A DNA stretch of 61,996 nt, counting the filler, from Choristocarpus tenellus KU-1152 (lineage: Eukaryota; Protista; Phaeophyceae): assembly GCA_964200185.2 (NCBI GenBank). It is 11 parts of 11 records of this genome, joined end to end, with 100 filler letters (N's around TTAATTAATTAA, not from the genome) between each part and the next. Parts side by side here need not be neighbours in the genome. Positions count along the whole stretch, not along the records: positions 15,734 to 29,740 come from CAXNAD020001302.1; 10 more parts are not named here. The stretch is one strand, 5' to 3'. Every line of letters starts with the position of its first letter. Positions within the stretch are counted from its first letter, which is position 1. Below, one piece after another: positions 15,634 through 29,740 of the stretch. A program made the position numbers and the translations under genes. The notes beneath the pieces are model-generated. The model was not told where the DNA came from. It did no database searches and saw only the letters and a list, made by a program, of their open reading frames with translations.

Positions 15634-17921
15634 NNNNNNNNNNNNNNNNNNNNNNNNNNNNNNNNNNNNNNNNNNNNTTAATTAATTAANNNNNNNNNNN
15701 NNNNNNNNNNNNNNNNNNNNNNNNNNNNNNNNNTTCTCCATGGCCCCCTGCCCTACTCCCCCCCGTGCTTCCCCCCCCCTGCCCCCCCCCCCCCCCCTCT
15801 ATCTCTTCTGGTAGCACCCCTGTGACATCACTCCCTCCCTGTCTAAGTTCATGACATTCTTAGGGATTCCCAGCACCCTCCCCTGTTCTTGAACATCACC
15901 CTCTCCCCTCTCCTCTGTACACTGCCAACTCTCTACCAACCCCAAACACACTAGTTATTGTTACTACCTCACATGACATGAGAGAGTGTATATTGTGTGA
16001 TAAACATCCTTGTGCCACTTACAATCTTTGTGGAATCCCCCTCCTTGTCCTCAAATCAGAAAAAGACAACCCAGACACAAAGCTCACTCATAGAGGAACT
16101 GTCCCCTCATCCACTGCAAACCTCATGCTATGAAGTCTTTTGATGGCTGAATGAGGAAACTTTGGAAGGGAAAAGTTAATAACTCATTGTATGATGTACT
16201 GAGTATTTGGTAATGCGCTAACATCATCTAACTAAATAATATTCAACACTCTCTGACTCAAATCGCGACCAATGACTAAACTATTTTCTTGTTTTTCTTG
16301 ATGTGATGATATTTACGAGGATATCTGTGCACCTCTCATCTCTTCAAGGCACATACATACCCCAAGATGACTGACCACCCATTTGAGGCATCCACATCCA
16401 CAACCTGATTTCTTGTGAAACCTCTCATTTCACGCAACATTTTCATCCTCAAGTGTATCTCCATGTTCATAGTTCAGCGAGTATTCAGAATCCAAACCGG
16501 TGTGGTGTATGTATTGAAAATTTTAGCCCTTGTCTAGAAAGTTCCAGAAAATGTTCAGAAACATATGGAGGTCTTAACCCCTATTGGCATGTTCAGATCT
16601 GTCCTTACTGTAAAGATGTCCTCATGTTGACACTATAGTACTCTGGGGAGAGACTTGCCTTCCGATAGCATCAGCCACAACAGCAGTGAAGGATTGCACA
16701 TGGAAACAAGGTACTGCATAGAAATATTCAATTATCACCCCAATTCCTGCATCATCACTATATCTACTCCCCCCCCCCCCCTCTCCCTGTTGGTCACCTT
16801 TCAGGCAATGCTTCGTTTCTGGTGGCTTGTAACAACTGCGGCAGCTTTGGCAATGGTTGCCTTTACACTGGTCAAGGTATGGTCGTGCTTTTGAGACGCA
16901 TACCCTCCTCATCTCTCTTGGTTTTTTCTTGTGGGCATGGAAACGCTTGGGTACCGGCTTTAGTTCACCGGCTTTAGTTCGGAAATATTTTGTTGGCACT
17001 TTGTGCATAAGTCTGGGGAATCAATTTGTAGAAGGTACCATCAGATCTGTCCGTGTTGGATTGGAGATGAGTAAAGAAGACACATAAAGCTTAGGGGATT
17101 GTCGGTGCAGTGTTCATCCTCAGCACATGAAAAAATATCATCTTAATGTCAATAAAGTATATGTTGAAAATGTCAACAGAGTAAGGTAATTGACTAAAAA
17201 GAGATGAGAGGTACCAGAGTTGCTGGCACTTTGTTACAAGTAGATATTTTCCAAAATGTATTCAAAATTTGCAAACAACAGAGAAATCAGTCAACACTCT
17301 CATGTCAAACTTAGCACTTCACCCATAGAAAAATGGGTGAAATTCAACATAGGATTGAAAAACTAGCTTACAATGCAAACTTGCCAACTCTTGTATTCTT
17401 TGGGTCATCATAGGTACAAAACGATTGAAGTTACACATGTAAGTCTATTGAAAAGCTGAGAATATACAAAATTATATTAGGCATGCACTAAGTGCAACAA
17501 TAAGGATGTGTTAGTGATGATGACATAAGTCCATGAAATTGAGTGAAAAAAAAACACTGTTTTGTTTTCTAGATCAGAGTTCAAGTGGAACATATACATA
17601 GTAGGCATGATTAGATTATTTCCTTAGTACTGCACCGTTTTGTTCATCAGCAACTTTTCATCTGATTTTTTTGCCCTATATTTCCTTTCAAATTGAAACG
17701 AATTTTTGTTCATTTCGTGTGAAAGTGATGACTAGGTCTCTATTGCTGACAATAAAATAATAACAACAATATTTGAGTATGAAGCTCCAAAGCAATAGAT
17801 GGAGAACAGAGAGGTTAAAAAATACATGCAATACAGAAAAGAACAGTAATGGCGGCATGAGAAAACTACACTAGCTTATATGTTGCTGTCTTGAATAAAT
17901 TAATTCCTCTTGTCATCAGCA

Positions 17922-18178
17922 GAACCAAAGTATCTTAGAGGGTAGAGCCGCGTCCATTTGGGGGTCAAAATCCAATGTTGCGATTTTGATGTAATTTTGA
18001 CAATGTGTTTGTTAGTAAGTGTCAATATCCTTGTTCCGGGCACATCTTGTCATAACGTATACATTTTACCTACTCCGAAATCTTTTGGAGTAGGTAAGTG
18101 TCATGAAAACCTTGAGGGAAGCCAAGCCCCAAATGGACAAACAGGGCAAAACCCGTACCCTCTGAGATACTTTCACTC
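17922..18178. mobile_element. MITE family A, full length
   Basis: Terminal inverted repeats present, perfect 4-bp TSD AGCA. Confidence 0.95.
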
Positions 18179-18218
18179 AGCATATGTTTAAATTAAAAAT
18201 AGTTCATACTGCAGGAAA

Positions 18219-18479
18219 GAGTCAAAGTAAACGAGAGGTACCTGGGTATTGACTGTTATTGCATTTTAAGCCAGTTTTTAATCTTATGCAATTCACCCAT
18301 GTTTCTATGGATGAAGTTCTAAGTTTGTACTCTAGAGCATTGCTTTCTCTATAGTTTGGAGACTTTTAGACAGAATTCAGAAAAATCCTGGAATGCATTT
18401 GAAAAAAAAGGCATATTTTGCATGTATTTGTCAGCATCCTTAAAATGCAACTCTGTGTACCTCCCTATTACTTTGACTA
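18219..18479. mobile_element. MITE family D, full length, opposite orientation
   Basis: GAGTCAAAGTAAACGAGAGGTACC...GTACCTCCCTATTACTTTGACT. Internal TTTCTATGGATGAAG is the reverse complement of CTTCATCCATAGAAA at ~51585. Confidence 0.75.
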
Positions 18480-20118
18480 ACTAGAGTAAGTATCTATAAA
18501 TAGAGCACCAGAAAATGCCAGCCGCTGACTTATCTCATATTAAAGCTTACCTCCTTTGAACACCTAATATACTATACATACTGTAAGCCGTTTGCTTCAA
18601 AGTGTATTGAAAGCATATTCAATGATTCACAAAGTGTAGTGTATGTAGTAGGTATCACGATCTATAAATATATTTTGTTGTGCATACTACGTACTCATTC
18701 TTTTCTTGTTCTTTTTTGGATATTCACCTTGTTGACCCTACATACAAAAGCCTCATCACACAAACAAGTTGTCTTCTAGTAATAGGTATATTGTTCCCAC
18801 CAGTACTTCAATATCCCATACTCCTCCAGCGAATACCATGCCTGCACCGTTCCCTTCATCTCCATTTTTTCTTCCCCCGGAAGACAGCACAAAGAGAACG
18901 ATTCCTCTCTCTCCAGTCCATTCCTTGCAGTAGGTATGGAGGAATTCAAAGATTATCGTAGCTCAGCTCCATGCCAACCTGGAGGAGTTGGTGAGAGTCA
19001 CTTTGGCAGGCACCACCAAAATCAAACAAGACCAACAGGTGATTGTGGTTGTCACTGTACCCCCATTATTGACATCGCTTGGTATTCCTTATTCCTTGTG
19101 CCCACAACCTTCCCAATGGCATCTTTCCCTACAAGGCATACCTTCCTGTTTAATGAGAAGCCCTGATTCCATTTTGCTGATGTAGGTTGCAGGATGAAGC
19201 TCCCCTTAACCCTGATCCTGAGTTGAGCAATTGTATCAACCCGGCTCATCCCCAAATAGGGCCCTTCGCTGTACCGATGCTGGCAATACCTCCAACGCTG
19301 ATTGACCATGATTATTAATTTAACATATTGTTGACTGTCACATTACCCCTGAACTGGTCGCATGCATCAAAGGAAGTGGCTGAGCAAAACGCAAGGTCGC
19401 AACAGCTTGGCAAGAGGCTGAAGAGCACTAGGTGAGGACTAGAATAGTGCAAGGGTTAGGACTTGCTTTCCTGTCAGGTGTGAGTTCACAATCCTTTGAT
19501 TGAGGCCAGTTTGTTTGAATGGGAAAATATGGACAAGCGAGTGACACATTTCATTTCCTACAGTGAGATTGTGTTTGTGGTAGCTCTCCAATGACACACT
19601 CTAGAGCTATGTTGGTAGAACCCAGATCATGTCTGGAAATGTTACTTGCATTTGAGTTTGGTTCAAACGGCACAAGTTTTCTGTTCAGGATTTGAGTGAA
19701 TGATTTTATGTGACTCTTCTTGTCACAAACAAACAAATCTGGAAAATAGTACGGCCTGTGCAATATTCCAAAAAATAGCTCCTTGGATTGATAGACCATG
19801 GCTGCCAACTGACCAATCCCCTAACTTGCCAATATTCCCTGATGCAAATCACCATTCCATACTTGTGTTTATAGCCTCTCTCCCTGTGAACACATCAAAA
19901 ATGTATCCGAATTCTACAGGGTAAGCCTGGTATTATGCCAAAATCAGATAGACGATTTCTAGGCTAGAGAAATCCAACTCAGAGAGGAACTGGAGGCAAT
20001 GTTTATGAGGACAACAGATGCGGTGAGATTGGATTGGGTGAGGGGTGTTCAAGTCATATGCAGTTGGCAAAGGACGAAGGAAGAGCAGTTTACTGCAGAT
20101 GACACAGATCAGCAAGCA

Positions 20119-21460
20119 TGTAACCAGTGAACATATTTATTGAATATTGATGATGGTGCTCCCCTCGTTTTGAACTATATTTGACCTATCCTACCTTCAC
20201 TTCCACTCTCAGTCTACGAGTTACTTACAAAAACGCACGGTACTTGCTCTTAGTTTGAACTTGAAACCCAACCAAAGAGTGGTATTTCAATTCATGTCCG
20301 GACTGTTCTACTTGTGTTGAACTAACATGGAAGAGGTACACGGGATGCTTTCTGAACTCAACCTCAACGTTGATTTCAATTACATATTGGACCAAATCTA
20401 AGGAAAAGAAACCTTCTAGTCAAGGCTTGAACCCCTCTTTGACCTTGAAACTATATTTCTGCTACTGTTCTGTGATGCAAACTCAGGAGAAGTCCCTGGA
20501 AGAGACAAATGCCCGTCTTGATATAGTCACAAGAGAAATCTTGCCCTCCTATTTTCTCTTAAGACTATATCCAGACGGGCATTTGTATCTTCCAGGGACT
20601 TACCCTGGGTTGGCATCTCAGGTAGCAATGGTTTAGGTCTAGGGTCAAAGAGGGGTTCAAGCCTTGACTAGAAGGTTCCTTTTCCTTAGACTTGGTCCAA
20701 CATGTGATTGAAATCAACATTGAGGTTGAGTACAGAAATCATCCCGTGTACCTCTTCCATGTCAGTTCAACACATGTAGAAAAGTTCGGACATGTAGTGA
20801 AACATCACTCTTTGGTTGGGTTTCAAGTTCAAACTAAGAGCAAGTACGGTGTGTTTTGTAAGTACCTCGTAGACTAAGAGTGGGAATGAAGGAAGGATAG
20901 GTCAAATATAGTTCAAAACGAGGGGAGCACCATCATCAACTATCAGTACATATTCACTGGGTTACACCCCTCGTTTTGAACTATATTTGACCTATCCTTC
21001 CTTCATTCCCACTCTCAGTCTACAAGTTACTTACAAAACACACCTGACTTGCTCTTAGTTTGAGCTTGAAACCCAACCAAAGAGTGGTGTTTCACTGCAT
21101 GTCCGGACTGTTCTACTTGTGTTGAACTAACATGGAAGAGGTGCATGGGATGCTTTCTGAACTCAACCTCAATGTTGATTTCAATCACATGTTGGACCAA
21201 TTCTAAGGAAATGATTGCTCTTCTACTTGTGTTGATCTAACATGGAAGAGGTACACAGGATCCTTTCTGAACTCAACCTCAATGCTGACTTCGATCACAT
21301 GTTGGACCAAATCTAAGGAAAAGGAACCTTCTAATCAAGACTTGAACCCCTCTTTGACCCTAAGCCTAAACCACTGCTACCTGTGATGCCAATCTAGGAG
21401 AAGTGCCTCAAAGAAACAAATGCCCACCTGGATATAGTCTTGAGAGAAAATGCTACCCTC
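20119..21460. repeat. Direct-inverted-direct triplication of a ~420-bp unit
   Basis: Unit at 20119-20549, inverted copy at 20551-20966, third direct copy at 20967-~21460 with an internal ~100-bp duplication. Confidence 0.92.
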
Positions 21461-22091
21461 CAGGAACAAGTGGCCTTGATGAGGTGAGAGAGTAAGAAGG
21501 GGCTGGTCCAACGTGTGGGGAACAAACAGATAAATTTTATGGATGGCAGTATAGGGCATCTCTCTTCTCATATAGTTCCTTGTGAGATAGAGAGACTTAA
21601 GAAGGCAAGGTTCCACACTATTGCTGGTATGATGCCATTCCCTCTCACACTTGTCACAACCTGACAATTGAATGACGGCACATTTTGCCTACTGTTGCTG
21701 CGATTCTTCATCACTCATCTAAAGGGGAGAACTTGAGGAGGCCAAAGGAAAGGACACAAGCAGAGGGACATCTCTTTCGCAGGTACAACTTCGTCCTGTA
21801 TTCCTCAACATATTGAATGTTGTGTATTTGTAACACATTCAATTCCCTATATTGTTGGGTACATTGAGTGATTGTTCGCCATATGTGCCTGCAGGCCTTC
21901 TCATGATAGAGATTGATGCTAAGACACAAATGGTTGCACAAAATAATGCCAGCATGGACTTTCATCACATGGAGAGGCAGTTGTTGAGAATGTATCTTCT
22001 GGGCACTAAACAAATCAAGTGCTCCATGAAATTGTGTTGGTCCTTCCTCTCCCTTTTGAGACAAAGATGCATAACTCTTGCTATTGAGGTG

Positions 22092-22348
22092 GAGTGAAAG
22101 TATCTTAGAGGGTGCGAGTTTCGCTCTGTTTGTCCATTTGGGGCTTGGCTTCCCATGATCTATTAATGACATTTTTCTACTCCAAAATATTTCGAGTAGA
22201 TAAAATGTATACGTTATGAAAAGGTGTGTCCGGAACAAGGATATAGAGACTTCCTAACAAACATGATAGCCAACACTACATCAAAATCGCAACATTGAAT
22301 TATGGCCCCCAAATGGACGAGGATCTACCCTCTAAGATAATTTGGCTC
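22092..22348. mobile_element. MITE family A, full length
   Basis: Terminal inverted repeats present, 3-bp TSD GTG. Confidence 0.93.
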
Positions 22349-23315
22349 GTGGTGACAAGTCTTGTGGAGCTTGGTCATCGCTTCTCTACTATACTGGTGG
22401 ATGGAATACACATCATGTTCATACCAGTGTTGTAGACTAATGGTCCTATCCAAGTAGTACATGGAAATATTGTGTTGACAAGGACTGGTGTCTGACCTTC
22501 TTGGGGCGCCTTGAGATGATTATGGTGCAGACTATATCTCTATCATTGATGATATAATCTAAGATCTAATGCAACACTCACTCATGTATATTTTCACTTT
22601 TGTCTCTTGTTATGTGGATGGTGGGCTACTTTGGTTTCCAGATTGGAAATACATCTACTCTATCACAATTTTGGGGGAGGGGAATGAGAAAGAACTGTTG
22701 AATTTTTGACTTCCTTGCACTCATCCATTCTCAACGCTATCCCACACCCATTGTCTTTCGTTGGCTGTTGAAAGGCATTGGTCCCAGGTTGCTTCCTTGC
22801 AGAATTGAAACAAGTCACCACTGCAAGGTGTGAGGAGATGCGGGCAAGGTGTCTTCTGCAGGTCTACTTTCTTGCAAGTGGGATCCCCGCCTTCTTTGCC
22901 ACCTTGGACAGGAAGTCCAAGATGCCAGCAATCATGATTTTCCGGGAAAATGTGCTCCCACAGATCCGTTCTAGGTGGGAATAGGCAGAGGCAGATAGGA
23001 AATATGGATTCAAGTTTCAGGGTGAAGGGCAGGCCTATTTGCAAGTGGAGACATGAGTTGACTGAAGGTGTGCTTCTTTGCTTGTTTCAAATCATTTCTA
23101 TTGCTGTGTCCATACAGTGTTTTGTAATACATTTTTTTACCAATGCCATGATCTCGTCCTTTGAGGAGACTCTCTGGGAAGGGGACTTATCTGTTTCTCA
23201 TCTCCTTCTAACTTGCCGTCTAACACCAAGGCACAAAAAGACCGTAGGACCTTACTGTATCTTCCAGCCCACCCTCCATAACTCCCCACAACCCCAATGT
23301 GGGCATTCTGCTAAT

Positions 23316-23574
23316 GAGTGAAAGTATCTTTGAGGGTGCGAGTTTTGGCCTGTTTGTCCACTTGGGGCTTGGCTTCCCATGGGGTTTTAAATGACATTTT
23401 CCTACTCCAAAACATTTTGGAGTAGGTAAATTGTATACGTTATGAAAAGGTGTGTCCAGAACATGTGTATTGACACTTCCTAACAAACACGAGGTGAAAA
23501 ATTGCATCATAATCACAACATTGAATTTTGACCCCCAAATGGATGCGGCTCTACCCTCTAAGATACTTTGGCTC
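23316..23574. mobile_element. MITE family A, full length
   Basis: Terminal inverted repeats present, perfect 4-bp TSD TAAT. Confidence 0.95.
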
Positions 23575-26500
23575 TAATGTTCATCAAATGCCCCTTGCTA
23601 CCCTCCAATGTACACCCACTTACTCTACATGTGTGTTAAATGGTTCAGCGTCATGATGAGGGCAGGAAAAATTGTACTGCGGGCCTTCCGCAAGGCCTTC
23701 TCACTTGGTCACCTTAAGGGCATTGCAGAGGGTGCAGGCCAGTACATCTCGCAACAAGTACAGGTTGTGTTGGTAAGGTGAGACTCAGGGTATGGGGTTG
23801 GGAGTCTTAGTGTACTCCAGAGTATATAGATTGGGAATAATTCTGTGGACTTTCCTCTGTTAAGAACATGCTAGATGTGGGAGAATCTTGCTCATCACTC
23901 TCCCTCATACAGGAATGGTGCTATTGGCATTTTTTAGGCACCCCTGTTTCAGTGGTGCTTCTATAGTGAGAATACCTTTAGAGTTGTGGAGGTTGGTGCT
24001 TTGGGTGTGAAGCAGTTACAGAAATGCTTCATGTGACCATGTTGATCGACATTTGCATGCAACGCAGGACTGGCAGCTGACTGGATATTCCACCAGCACA
24101 TGAGCATGTATTCACATCCAAATAACTACGCCATCCCTTCGCTTCCCCAAAGACCTCAGCAGCAAGGGGTGACGTCAACATCATCCAGCCAGAGGGAAGC
24201 TCAGAGATGTTGTTCCAGAGCTGCTTCCCGTATTTCAAACCACTGTTTGACGTCTTGCCTGCAGTGGGGGATACGCAGGTCAATGCTTGCTACAATCCTA
24301 CGCTTCTTGGAGCTGGGGGGAACGACACTGTGTACAGGTTGACCCTGGACACAACTATTCACCGGCCTTCCAGTGGTCTGGGTCGTGCCCTTGCAATGGC
24401 TGTGTCGTGCGGTCTGATGCACAAGGATGACCAGGGGTTAGTCTCCGTAGCCCTGAAGACCATGGAGCATGTGAGTCTCTGCACTACTCTGTAGTATGTT
24501 CTGAGTGAGCGAGATCTTGTGTGCAGGCCCATGCAAATTTGTGTTCGTGCTTAATCACAAAGAGGATTGACTGCTGCATTTCCATTACTCAGGCAGGTAC
24601 CATCAACTTGGTAGCCCCTTTTCTGCTTAGTGCATGTAAGGAACAATTGCTGTGTCTTTGAACAAGAAGAGACACACTTGACATCTCTGTACACTTATCA
24701 TTTTGTGTGGTGCTTGCTGCAAGTGCATTGAGTGGTGATTTTGATGGAAATCTGATAGAAAATAGAAAAAGGAACTGTGTTGGGACAGGTGCGCATTGTA
24801 TACTCTTGCATAAGTTGTGGTGGTGCATCTGGTTGTACTGCAGAAAGGTAGTGGGACATCCAATACGAGCAAGGTAAATCTGGTATAGCAAAATCTTGTG
24901 GTTTTGGTTTGCTTTGTTTGAAGCCCTCCAGAGTGTCATACCCTCCATGATATGAAGAATTCGCTGCTCCACACCATTGGGTTGTCGGTGGTGTAGATCT
25001 CCCCACTTCTGATGCTGTACTGTTCCTGACTGGTGGCATTCCTCACGGTCCCTGTAAGATTAACATGCAAGACGCTCCCGCAGGATAACCCTTGCGTAGC
25101 CCAGTTTGCAGCTCGTGAAATGGCAATACACAGTCGGTGAGTATATGTCATCATAACCTGACTGGGCATGTGTCCTTGAACCATGAGTGCCTGTGGACAT
25201 AATTTCCTGATAATCATAGTACTACTTGTAGAGATTTCCTTACACTCTCATCAAAGTGTATCCTATTGATAGAGCCTTTCCTGTAGCGGTATGTCCTTGA
25301 CTCTGCTTGGATCTCCTCCACCATTTGTACCACAGGAGGACGGTGGTCAAACCCCCCACCTACCCTACTCAACCTACCCAACTAAAGCACTCCTAATGTT
25401 GCCTTCCTATGTTTATCGCTGGCCCTTCCCACTAAGCCTGCAGCATTGCTCCTCACATCAACGTGGTCCAGCTATTGGCCTTCCGTCCAGGGGGTTCCAT
25501 GCTGCTGGAGACTGGAGAGAGATCCCTGCATAATGTGATGAGTGCACACCGTGCCAGCCCAGGCCCAGACAACTCCCTGTCCTTCCAGCTGAGGTGAAAG
25601 AGAAATAGCTGGTCGGTTTACTACCAAGTTGCTTCCCTTGATTAAACTCTGACCCTGTTTGTGCCTTGAAAACATTTAATTGCTATGCACATGGTGTCCC
25701 AAGACCTTTCTTGAGTACTACACCAAGGTTAGGAAACAGACGTTGTCTGATGGGAATCCGGATGTACTCTTTGTAATCTCGTACGATGGAGGCTCCGACA
25801 TTGTTGTGGGTGTTTTCCCATCAGGAAGTACCACACAATCCTTGCTGAAGGGTGCCCTTGCAATGGTGGTGGGTGCCTTCTCGATCTCGTCTCTGTTGTC
25901 AAAATTCCTTAGCGTTAGGGTTATTTCTTTCTGTGGGCAGACAGTGGCTGTCACTGAGTCAATGTCCTCACTATCGGTGATAATATGCCAATAGCATGAC
26001 TTTTCCAATGACATGTCCCCTCAGTATATTCAGTAAGCCCTTACACCAACCAAGAGCATAACAATTACAATCTTGTGGTGGGTTTGAAAAGCAGGAGCCC
26101 AAGGAGGAAGTGTTACATGAGAAATTGAAATGAGGAAACAAAATACATTCCCAACACAATATTATGAAAACTTAATCAGCCCAGTAATGAGGGTATTATG
26201 CATCAGACCTACATGCCAATGGAAACATATATTGTCTCACTTGCTGTGGATTCTATTTTTTGCACTCCACCTGGGTTGCCCATTGCACATATATAGATGT
26301 TTGATACAGGCTGAAAGGGACTATCCCACCTGCACCTGCATGGCATCATCCACCGTGATGTAAAGCCAGGCAACATGGTGGTGTTTCCCGGGGGAGTCAC
26401 CAAGATAATTGATCTGGGCATCGCAGTATGTCAGTGGGAAAAATAGGATTTGTTTTGGAAGGCCCCTACTTCTTTTTCACTTGCTCACGATACTGCATGT

Positions 26501-27305
26501 AGCATAGTCTGTATGCCTCTAGTCTGACACATGTTTTATTCTGCTCATTGTACCATAGCCACAATTCTCCTCCCAGCAATGATTGTGTCCAATTTCGCGT
26601 TTCGACAGAAGAATGGTACCATTGCTATGTGCTTTGCTGCTACTTGTGAACAAGAGAGTTCAAGACTTGACTGTATGCTGCTTCAACCCAACCTAGTCTT
26701 AGATAGATATGCTGTTGATCTCCAGTTTAGCAACACAGCTTAGTCAGTCCCTTGTCCTCTCTCTCAACACTGTTGCCCATCACATCTGTCCAAAGATGCC
26801 GGAGAGAAGGTGAAAACAGTGGGAACAGTGACATATATGCCCATAGAGGCGTTCCATCCATCTGAGAGGGAGAGCAGTCCGGCCCAGGATGTCTACGGCT
26901 TGGCAGTATGTGTCCTGGAGGCAATATCAAAGGTGATTCGCCCCATGGGTGACCATGAGGTGAGAAGGATCAACGGTCAATATAGTCCAATGGGTAAACA
27001 ACTGCTTTTCTGCGACATGAAATGCAAGTGGCAGATGAGAGTACTATGCAATGACTCCTCAATGTCATGCCCGTCCCCGTACTGCCGCTGGCACTTCTAC
27101 TTGCCAATTGATGCGGTTTTGTGTTCACCCTGTGACCTCTGTGTCTTGCAACTTATGCTATGCAACGTCATACATCATTTTGATGATTTTTTGTTTGTGG
27201 TCTGATTAATGTGTAGAACTTGCCTTTTTACAGGCTGGACCACTGCCAGAGTACTTTCATTTTTTCTTTCCAAGGACACGATGAAAACTACACCGTTCTG
27301 ATGGT

Positions 27306-27481
27306 GACCCAAAGTATCTGAGGGGGGGGAGGTCTACAGTAGGGTGTCCATTTGGACCGAAATCAGAAAAAAATCATTTGCATTATCCATCCGACGTATG
27401 CAACCAAATCACCCAAAAATCTCGACATGAAAAAATTGACCCCAAATGGACAGCCGCCAACCCCCCCAGATACTTTGAGCC
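27306..27481. mobile_element. MITE family B, full length
   Basis: Perfect 4-bp TSD TGGT. Confidence 0.95.
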
Positions 27482-27542
27482 TGGTAGGGACACCGTCTCA
27501 CCGCAATATAGTAGTGGCATGATTGAATGTGGAGCAATAGTA

Positions 27543-27800
27543 GAGTGAAATTATCTTAGAGGGTACGAATTTTGCCCTGTTTGTCCATTTGGGGCTTGGT
27601 TTCCATTGGGGTTCATATGACATTTTCCTACTTGAAAAAAATTCAGAGCAGGTGAAATGTATATGTTTTGAAAAGGTGTGTCCAGAACAAGGATATTGGC
27701 ACTTCCTAACAAACACGATAATCAAAATTACATCGAAATCGCAACATTGGATTTTGGCCCCCAAATGGACGCGGCTTTACCCTCTAAGATACTTTGGCTC
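27543..27800. mobile_element. MITE family A, full length
   Basis: Terminal inverted repeats present, perfect 4-bp TSD AGTA. Confidence 0.95.
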
Positions 27801-29618
27801 AGTACGCACTTCTAAAGTAAATACAGAGTAGGGGGATAGTCACAACCAAGAAAGGTCCGAGTTGGTGGTACAGGGCGCATGAAAATATCATGAAAAGATC
27901 AATGGTAGTATCAAGGGCACGTGGTGTAGCAAAATAGCATATTCTCCTTGAATGGGTACGTACTTCTCTAAGGTACAGACCTCTCCTGGATCGTATGTTT
28001 TTCGAAACAGAAGTATGATATTGTGTGTGTGTTTGTGTGTTCAAGGCGTTAAAACGGAAAATTCATTGTGCCTGAGCTGCCACCATTGTCAAGATATGCA
28101 GCACACTATTTCGGATCCATTTCGTTCCCAAACGGACCTAGACTACTTTGTCAACATCCTTCATCCAACCATATGGAATATTGGACAGGACTCAGTGCTT
28201 CAGGAGCAGGCTGCTCTAGATATTGGGGTGTTCTCAAAGGAGGAAGCAGAAGGTTGGGACTTTGAGGAAGAGGCAACTGTAATGGTGTGTTATGTTTTTT
28301 GAGAGAGGTTCCTCTTCTACTGCTTCGATGTTTTTAACTATTGAATATATGAACCTAGTTGAGGTACAGCAAGAAATTGTACTATAGCCCTAGATAAATA
28401 TGTGTGCACCATGTATTCCGTGGTGATTTCTTGCCACCCCTAAATGCCTCTCTAATTTGCACCATTGAATTGCATAGATGAGGGACATTCTCTGACTGTT
28501 TTCTGCCAGTCCATCGAGAACTGGTTGGTGATGTATGAGACCCCAATCATGGCCTCCTAGGATGGCGACCGTGGCTTGGATTTACAGAACAGCAACAAGT
28601 TTTCTTGTTTTTAAGTCCCGGATAGCTTGATGCAATTGGCATTTCCTGAAACCCTTTCCACATGGAGATCCTGTTGAATGGGATGATTCAAGGTTGTTCT
28701 TTTTTCAGTTGGCGGGAGTTATCATCCCTTCTAGTTGAACTGCCTTGGCCACACTGATGATTGCAGGGACTGATGTTTGCCTGCATTGTGTGCTCTTGAC
28801 TGTGAAAGATGGTGAGGATAGGTTTCCTCCTTTAATTTCAATGATGCTTAAGAAGAGGGGATTTTTTGTGGATTCTCTACTTGTGTGTGTGTGTATGTGC
28901 CGTTGCACAGGCAGGAAGTGCATTATTGCGATCTATGTTGTCTGCTTCAGTATGTGATGGATGTGCGCCCTTAGCACTTTGTTGCCAGTGGTTCGTTCCT
29001 AAGTATGGAGTAATATCCGTGTAGTTTCCTCTAGTATGGAGTCAGCCACTACCTCTTTGCTAGCTGCTGGTGGCTGAAGAGACTGGGGAGCCAATATGCT
29101 TCCAAATATGTGCAATAAATAGTTGGGCTTACATTATATGAGACATGAACGTGTGATAGAGTTGTGCAGGGCCAAGGTAGTATACACTGTGTGATCAAGA
29201 GTGTAATCCTTGCAGTCCGAGTTACTCCACATTTGTTCTTTGGTGGACACACTGCATCACAATGAGGGAGGGTGATTTTCTCTTGTTGCATTCTATCTAC
29301 GTATAGATGTGTGAGTGAACATGGTGTTACACATGTTCTGCTTTGTGGTGGTGGCATGTTGATGCCCTCTTTTTGGCAAACATTTCTGATGTTGTGCTTT
29401 GTATTTGTTTGTCTTTGAATCTACCTGAGGAAGAGGAACCAAGAAATGCCCAAGCCAGCACAATTTGCTGCATGAGGTTCTGTGTGCTCAATGTGCTACC
29501 CTTCTACTGGTTTCTAAGTTGCAGCTTGCTGTATACTTCGAAGTAGTAGTATGCATGTGTGATGCACGTGTGAAATGAGGGAGGGTAGTGTAAAAGTATA
29601 TTCTTCTCAGTTGGTTAT

Positions 29619-29740
29619 GAGTCAAAGTACCTTAGAGGGTGGAGCCGCGTCCATTTGGGGGTCAAAATCCAATGTTGCAATTTTGATGTAATTTTGGCTC
29701 TCATGTTTGTTAGAAAGTGTCAATATCCTTGTTTCGGACA
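29619..29740. mobile_element. MITE family A, partial
   Basis: Short-spacer end GAGTCAAAGTACCTTAGAGGG..., truncated by gap. Confidence 0.9.

Follow-up and report, generated by a model that had tools for sequence, protein, structure and literature searches.

Unequal spacers at the ends of two abundant MITE families of Choristocarpus tenellus and a possible pairing of short with long ends

The window analyzed here is a stretch of 61,996 nucleotides assembled from 11 parts of the genome of Choristocarpus tenellus KU-1152. An earlier note on this window had claimed that MITE families with different interiors share asymmetric ends, in which two sequence boxes are separated by a 16-bp spacer at one end and by a 26-bp spacer at the other, and had likened this arrangement to the 12/23 rule of RAG recombination. 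The locus thus raises the question of whether the two spacer lengths reflect a rule by which a short end is paired with a long end, or whether they have a simpler origin. The analysis was focused on the piece at positions 15734-29740 (14 kb); copies 5489, 10633, 43878, and 55337 of the earlier note, its other family B copies, and its family C lie elsewhere in the window. In the piece, family A is represented by four complete elements and family B by one, together with one partial copy. The complete family A copies are 257-259 bp long and have pairwise identities of 84-86%, and the interior of the 176-bp family B copy is unrelated to that of family A. The sixth copy, at 29619, was absent from the earlier list; its short end is present and the rest is lost at the edge of the piece. 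The annotated features are as follows.

17922..18178, plus strand: complete family A MITE of 257 bp with the short end on the left, the copy described in the earlier note
17918..17921, plus strand: left target-site duplication (TSD), 4 bp, AGCA
18179..18182, plus strand: right TSD, 4 bp, AGCA
17927..17935, plus strand: box1 of the short end, within the 22-bp imperfect TIR at 17922-17943
17936..17951, plus strand: 16-bp spacer, the initial 8-9 bases of which are common to the long end
17952..17961, plus strand: box2 of the short end
17975..17987, plus strand: box3, confined to the short end and 13 bp internal to box2
18065..18097, no strand assigned: internal hairpin of family A, stem of ~14 bp
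18129..18138, minus strand: box2 of the long end
18139..18164, minus strand: 26-bp spacer of the long end
18165..18173, minus strand: box1 of the long end, within the TIR at 18157-18178
22092..22348, minus strand: family A copy with the long end on the left, spacers 26/16, imperfect TSD GGTG/GTGG
23316..23574, minus strand: family A copy, spacers 26/16, TSD TAAT
27306..27481, minus strand: family B copy of 176 bp, spacers 26/16 and G-rich, TSD TGGT
27543..27800, minus strand: family A copy, spacers 26/16, TSD AGTA
29619..29740, plus strand: family A copy truncated at the edge of the piece, with only its short end present

The elements span 176-259 bp, and the ORFs overlapping them are short chance ORFs only. 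Their small size, TIR-bounded and non-coding organization, TSDs, and dispersal at high copy number support the assignment of families A and B to non-autonomous DNA transposons (MITEs). Family A also contains two internal palindromes, namely a repeat with 8-bp arms that overlaps box3 (17965-17989) and the hairpin at 18065-18097, and the whole family A element folds at z = -6.7.

A scan of the piece for box1-N(x)-box2, with one mismatch tolerated per box, gave 11 matches, six with x = 16 and five with x = 26; no other value was observed, and 200 Markov-shuffled controls gave a mean of 0.005 matches. Within the piece the distribution of spacer lengths is bimodal, with 16 or 26 bp in all 11 ends, and one end of each kind is present in each of the five complete copies (4 A, 1 B). 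The 16/26 spacing reported earlier for the family A copies 17922, 22092, 23316, and 27543 and for the family B copy 27306-27481 is therefore exact in every case. The confinement of box3 to the short-spacer end was likewise reproduced: this box occurs at each of the six short ends of A and B, 13 bp internal to box2, and at this position of no long end, where the best match (8-10 of 13 letters) falls elsewhere. A box3-like word of this quality in the long spacer of family A was discounted, since it is not kept in B. Apart from these ends, a lone box2 variant of the GTCCG form was observed on the minus strand at 28128-28137, immediately preceded by a box1-like word without any spacer; it is possibly a chance occurrence or a decayed end of family C, a third family of the earlier note.

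The two ends of family A are identical at 20 of their first 22 bases, and this 22-bp imperfect TIR includes the initial 8-9 bases of both spacers. The family A end is thus better read as a 22-bp TIR, followed by a gap of 8 or 18 bp and then by an inner inverted box. In family B, both spacers open with a G-run. The earlier statement that spacer sequence is not conserved consequently applies between the families, but not within A, whose ends have the 8-9 bases in common, or within B, whose spacers share the G-run start. Box2 starts 30 bp from the tip at one end and 40 bp at the other. The 10-bp offset between the spacers amounts to 0.95 of a helical turn, which agrees with the difference of about one turn noted earlier and means that box2 faces the same side of the helix at either end.

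The simplest origin for the shared spacing would be descent alone, with A and B being deletion derivatives of one ancestor in which one end had undergone a neutral indel of 10 bp, and with the spacing itself devoid of function. Several observations agree with this: the short and long spacers of A align with an insertion, so that the asymmetry did originate in an indel; the G-richness of the proximal spacer is common to A and B; and, outside the piece at 15734-29740, the earlier note lists family B copies with spacers of 28-30 and 15-18 bp and family C with 17 and 24 bp. Comparison of A with B, which involves two families only and a single B copy corrected to majority letters, points in the other direction. 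Box1 and box2 are identical at 19 of 19 positions at both ends and box3 at 12 of 13, whereas the linkers agree at 25 of 65 positions (38%, or ~1.3 substitutions per site) and the similarity of the interiors does not exceed that of shuffles. Nevertheless, all five distances are equal in the two families: 5, 16, and 13 bp at the short end and 5 and 26 bp at the long end. In a rough neutral-indel simulation, run at 1-1.5 substitutions per site with an assumed rate of 0.05-0.1 indels per substitution, all five distances were kept with a probability of 0.001-0.05. Moreover, a GGTCAA word between box2 and box3 is common to A and B one base out of register (shuffle p 0.007) and the total of 13 bp is kept, which suggests compensating indels.

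Conserved boxes, diverged linkers, and retention of every distance favor a length constraint over recent descent, and the claim that boxes and distances are conserved across A and B while spacers and interiors are not (19/19 versus 25/65) is borne out. Recent derivation of A and B from one ancestor, named earlier as grounds for rejecting the idea, is unlikely given the linkers and the unrelated interiors. With near-invariant boxes, linkers at 38% identity, five kept distances, and an apparent compensating indel all standing against it, we regard descent with a functionless spacing as improbable, and we conclude from the comparison that spacer length is under constraint. Within each family, the proximal spacer is closer between the family's own two ends than to the matching end of the other family; the ends thus co-evolve, and the 10-bp difference nonetheless survives in both families. 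A related AAAATC word follows box2 at the short end of A and at the long end of B.

The genome-wide behavior of the families was assessed using contigs from two sequencing runs of one organism aligned to positions 27100-28000 at 80% likeness. The numbers of aligned contigs were 47,235 and 31,932, and the summed depth, which is not a copy number, was ~3 million at both ends of A versus 20-33 in the flanks. These data point to a family dispersed through the genome, with copies numbering very roughly 10^5, an order that agrees with six copies in 14 kb. Unaligned contig ends start exactly at 27481, 27543, and 27800, and the flanks lack a consensus (agreement of 0.33-0.37), which indicates that the termini are right and that insertion is dispersed; the flanks of the insertion sites in contigs have a mild AT lean. 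Run X3, which comes from a different organism in the same study, yielded a single weak read out of 12.8 million, and this was not counted as presence.

The depth ratio of long to short ends of family A was 1.00 and 1.13 in the two runs, and no indels in either A spacer were found among the listed variants, every one of which would be outranked by a variant at 1%. The long spacers of family B carry 1-3 extra G in 4.5-9% of the sampled depth and its short spacers in ~2%, as expected from slippage in a G-run. The depth of the B long end is about ten-fold below that of its short end, probably because copy 27306 differs from the majority at no fewer than 11 of 70 positions, and given this under-sampling the spacer distribution of B is not well measured. 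The 15 best-supported joints, ranked above 357 others in a count that does not cover every event, are all located at element termini and represent neighboring insertions; no symmetric 16/16 or 26/26 form and no joint of two like interiors was found among these 15. Many of the contigs aligned to 27100-28000 contain A and B elements adjacent to each other, in all orientations and with varied gaps. At such a density, composite elements could form from neighboring ends, providing a natural test set for a pairing rule.

The equal numbers of short and long ends and the lack of symmetric copies do not prove such a rule, since both are expected from clonal amplification alone; the same applies to the pairing of unlike ends in all five complete elements of the piece, which clonal descent would also produce. 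All of the data presented here, including the offset of 0.95 turn, can be explained by binding that is constrained in phase at each end separately, with box2 set at n or n+10 bp as the footprint of the autonomous parent, no pairing rule, and like ends working too. Because symmetric elements would require a rare rearrangement, their absence is weak evidence against this explanation. It is less easily reconciled with three other features: (i) the proximal spacers are homogenized between the ends of each family, yet the length asymmetry persists in both, (ii) box3 marks one end only, and (iii) like ends work poorly in the tested systems with unequal spacers, piggyBac and ProtoRAG. We therefore hold phase-constrained binding without pairing to be a possible but somewhat unlikely account.

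The explanation that we prefer, to which we assign about an even chance, is that the two ends are functionally different and that short-plus-long pairs are favored. Families A and B would be moved in trans, by cut and paste, by a DDE transposase, most likely of the Sola2 type. Its catalytic core would hold the outermost 22 bp, with box2 gripped by a DNA-binding domain that is tethered separately. Box3 would be an extra site of the short end, so that this end would nucleate assembly, and the long end, being one turn longer, would be captured next, giving a synaptic complex that is asymmetric. Like pairs would then transpose far less well than short-plus-long pairs, and amplification would have been limited to elements with one end of each kind. 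In piggyBac and ProtoRAG, unequal spacers impose left-plus-right pairing, and by analogy this precedent favors some exclusion of like ends here. An obligate rule of short-plus-long synapsis is a stronger statement, which we infer from the arrangement of the ends. Stronger still is the proposal that a Sola-type transposase independently evolved a strict one-turn (16/26) pairing rule like the RAG 12/23 rule and that this rule was conserved across diverged families; we consider this proposal unlikely.

The affinity of the elements was examined using their termini and TSDs. Four of the five complete copies have exact 4-bp TSDs (AGCA, TAAT, TGGT, and AGTA), none of which extends to 5 bp, in agreement with the 4-bp duplication described earlier; at copy 22092 the TSD is imperfect (GGTG/GTGG), off by one G within a G-run. 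The target 4-mer has A or T at both ends in five of six copies (AGCA, TAAT, TGGT, AGTA, and TTAT), and the TSD may thus lean mildly towards WNNW, a trend recognized post hoc in a small sample. The element ends begin with GAG, GAA, GAC, or GGC. Sola2 elements generally have GRG...CYC termini. The GRG...CYC termini and the likeness to Sola2 proposed earlier fit family A, with GAG in eight of its nine ends and a 4-bp TSD, but the two ends of the B copy, GAC and GGC, depart from this pattern, and no transposase was found in the sequences searched. The relation to Sola2 would accordingly be one of resemblance, not membership, as judged from TSD length and termini only. Sola3 and Kolobok elements duplicate TTAA. 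An assignment to piggyBac, Sola3, or Kolobok was rejected, the TTAA duplication being absent from the TSDs AGCA, TAAT, TGGT, and AGTA.

Identity with Transib/RAG was also rejected, as the earlier note had argued: there is no terminal CAC heptamer, and the TSD is 4 and not 5 bp in four of four exact cases. A wider alternative would place the elements in a different superfamily or in one not yet described, such as a remote Transib/RAG-like lineage with altered terminal sequence and TSD length; the one-turn offset would then have been inherited and would not be convergent. Such an offset has so far been described in Transib/RAG, RAG transposition sometimes yields 4-bp TSDs, and no protein evidence ties the elements to Sola2. 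However, the 5-bp TSD and the invariant CAC terminus of Transib/RAG-like elements are both missing, box1 begins 5 bp from the tip, and box2 is unlike the nonamer, so that we judge this alternative very improbable.

The search for an enzyme covered 20 of the 89 stop-free frames of at least 55 aa in the piece, and comparison with Pfam (without a Sola model) gave only a weak kinase match; an Atlas search with a coding-looking stretch at 22867-23016 gave no match. Neither the piece nor three public collections (viral, metagenome, and bacterial genome) yielded an autonomous element or a transposase. The end pattern gave 23 matches in the viral collection, first 0 and later 10 in the metagenome collection, and 4 among bacterial genomes; all were attributed to chance, since their spacers are scattered, none of the spacers is G-rich, and no match has a partner end.

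The piece has a GC content of 43% and a CpG observed/expected ratio of 0.33, the latter suggesting a methylated eukaryotic genome. Copy 17922 is enclosed by a pair of 41-bp inverted repeats (88%) at 17306-18327, which suggests an older TIR element of ~1 kb that may have been the target of the MITE insertion. The region 20133-21451, unrelated to the MITEs, consists of a ~400-bp unit in forward, inverted, and forward orientation with a partial duplicate (87-93% identity), which together form large palindromes; the arrangement could be of the Penelope-like or foldback type. Matches to Rfam, in this region as elsewhere, were sub-threshold hairpins only, and none fell in the MITEs. A spliced protein-kinase relic lies on the plus strand at 24040-27000, with the glycine loop, the VALK lysine, HRD and DLG motifs, an activation segment, in-frame stops upstream, and a weak Pfam kinase match. 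Its first exon has no true homologue among 1.8 billion representatives, and two matches from an exon-by-exon search were rejected as unrelated bacterial proteins. By eye, the minus strand at ~19050-19350 has a degenerate translation that resembles LTR-retrotransposon RNase H, with no Pfam match. The minus strand at 22666-23310, between copies 22092 and 23316, reads as a decayed coding sequence that is interrupted by stops and has no Pfam or Atlas match.

Comparison with known systems revealed partial counterparts of the A and B ends. The Sola2 elements DFa-1/2/3 of Dictyostelium fasciculatum have 4-bp TSDs and GAA/GAG termini, and published Sola2 ends also vary (PMC3627910). They resemble A and B in the non-TTAA 4-bp TSD, the short imperfect TIR, and the G-purine termini (GAG in A), whereas the TSDs of the DFa and PPa elements are AT-rich (AWWT) and those of A and B are mixed with a mild AT lean. 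By eye, a 12-letter AT-rich word recurs at both ends of DFa-2, at position 25 in one and at 31 in the other, and DFa-1 lacks this repetition; as a weak lead, Sola2 may thus have offset inner boxes. In the searchable literature, outside which the defining 2009 Sola paper lies, no description of a bipartite 16/26 design for Sola and no study of end recognition by a Sola transposase were found.

In piggyBac of Trichoplusia ni, a 13-bp TIR is separated from a 19-bp inner repeat by a gap of 3 or 31 bp (PMC5861402), and the wild-type enzyme neither excises nor integrates left-left donors in cells (10.1101/2022.09.26.509586). Like A and B, it combines a terminal repeat with an internal inverted box, unequal left and right spacers, and a 4-bp TSD; it differs by its TTAA-only duplication and its offset of 28 bp (2.7 turns), as compared to the variable TSD and one-turn offset of A and B. 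On the weaker reading alone, A and B would be a well-defined MITE clan of very high abundance, whose ends are unequal in the manner of piggyBac. The hAT element Hermes has an 8-bp TSD. Its left end, which carries extra subterminal sites, nucleates the complex (PMC10368747). This resembles the role proposed for box3, with extra sites at one end starting assembly, but Hermes has many short scattered repeats whereas A and B have two fixed boxes.

ProtoRAG of amphioxus has bipartite TIRs with rigid 27/31 spacers and prefers the asymmetric pair (PMC8289069); it differs from A and B by a 4-bp offset, a CAC terminus, a 5-bp TSD, and the RAG1L/RAG2L enzyme. Ends resembling RSS12/RSS23 are found in Transib5, Transib2_AG, and TransibN1-3_AG, non-autonomous families included (PMC1131882), and Transib/RAG-like elements have an invariant terminal CAC and a 5-bp TSD (PMC1131882, PMC7204232). 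RAG RSS and Transib ends share with A and B two boxes, a spacer of constrained length, and a difference of about one turn (11 bp versus 10 bp in A and B). In contrast, A and B lack the CAC heptamer and the A-rich nonamer, and have a 4-bp TSD and a third box at the short end, and a pairing rule would be a prediction from their sequence.

The novelty of the pairing concept was therefore overstated in the earlier note: piggyBac and ProtoRAG are established cases in which unequal spacers go together with a need for one left and one right end, and a 12/23-like offset has been described in several Transib families. The new point is the one-helical-turn offset in a non-Transib element with a 4-bp duplication, of which no report for Sola or another element with a 4-bp TSD was found in the literature searched, the defining Sola paper being outside it. 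The A and B ends supply three candidate binding boxes with exact distances, and a directional recombinase that recognizes box sequences of its own might be a useful part for genome engineering. As to the origin of the 12/23 rule, ProtoRAG has 27/31 spacers and 12/23 spacing occurs in only some Transib families. A one-turn offset in an unrelated superfamily, if true, would show that this geometry is a repeated means of distinguishing two transposon ends and is not peculiar to the RAG lineage.
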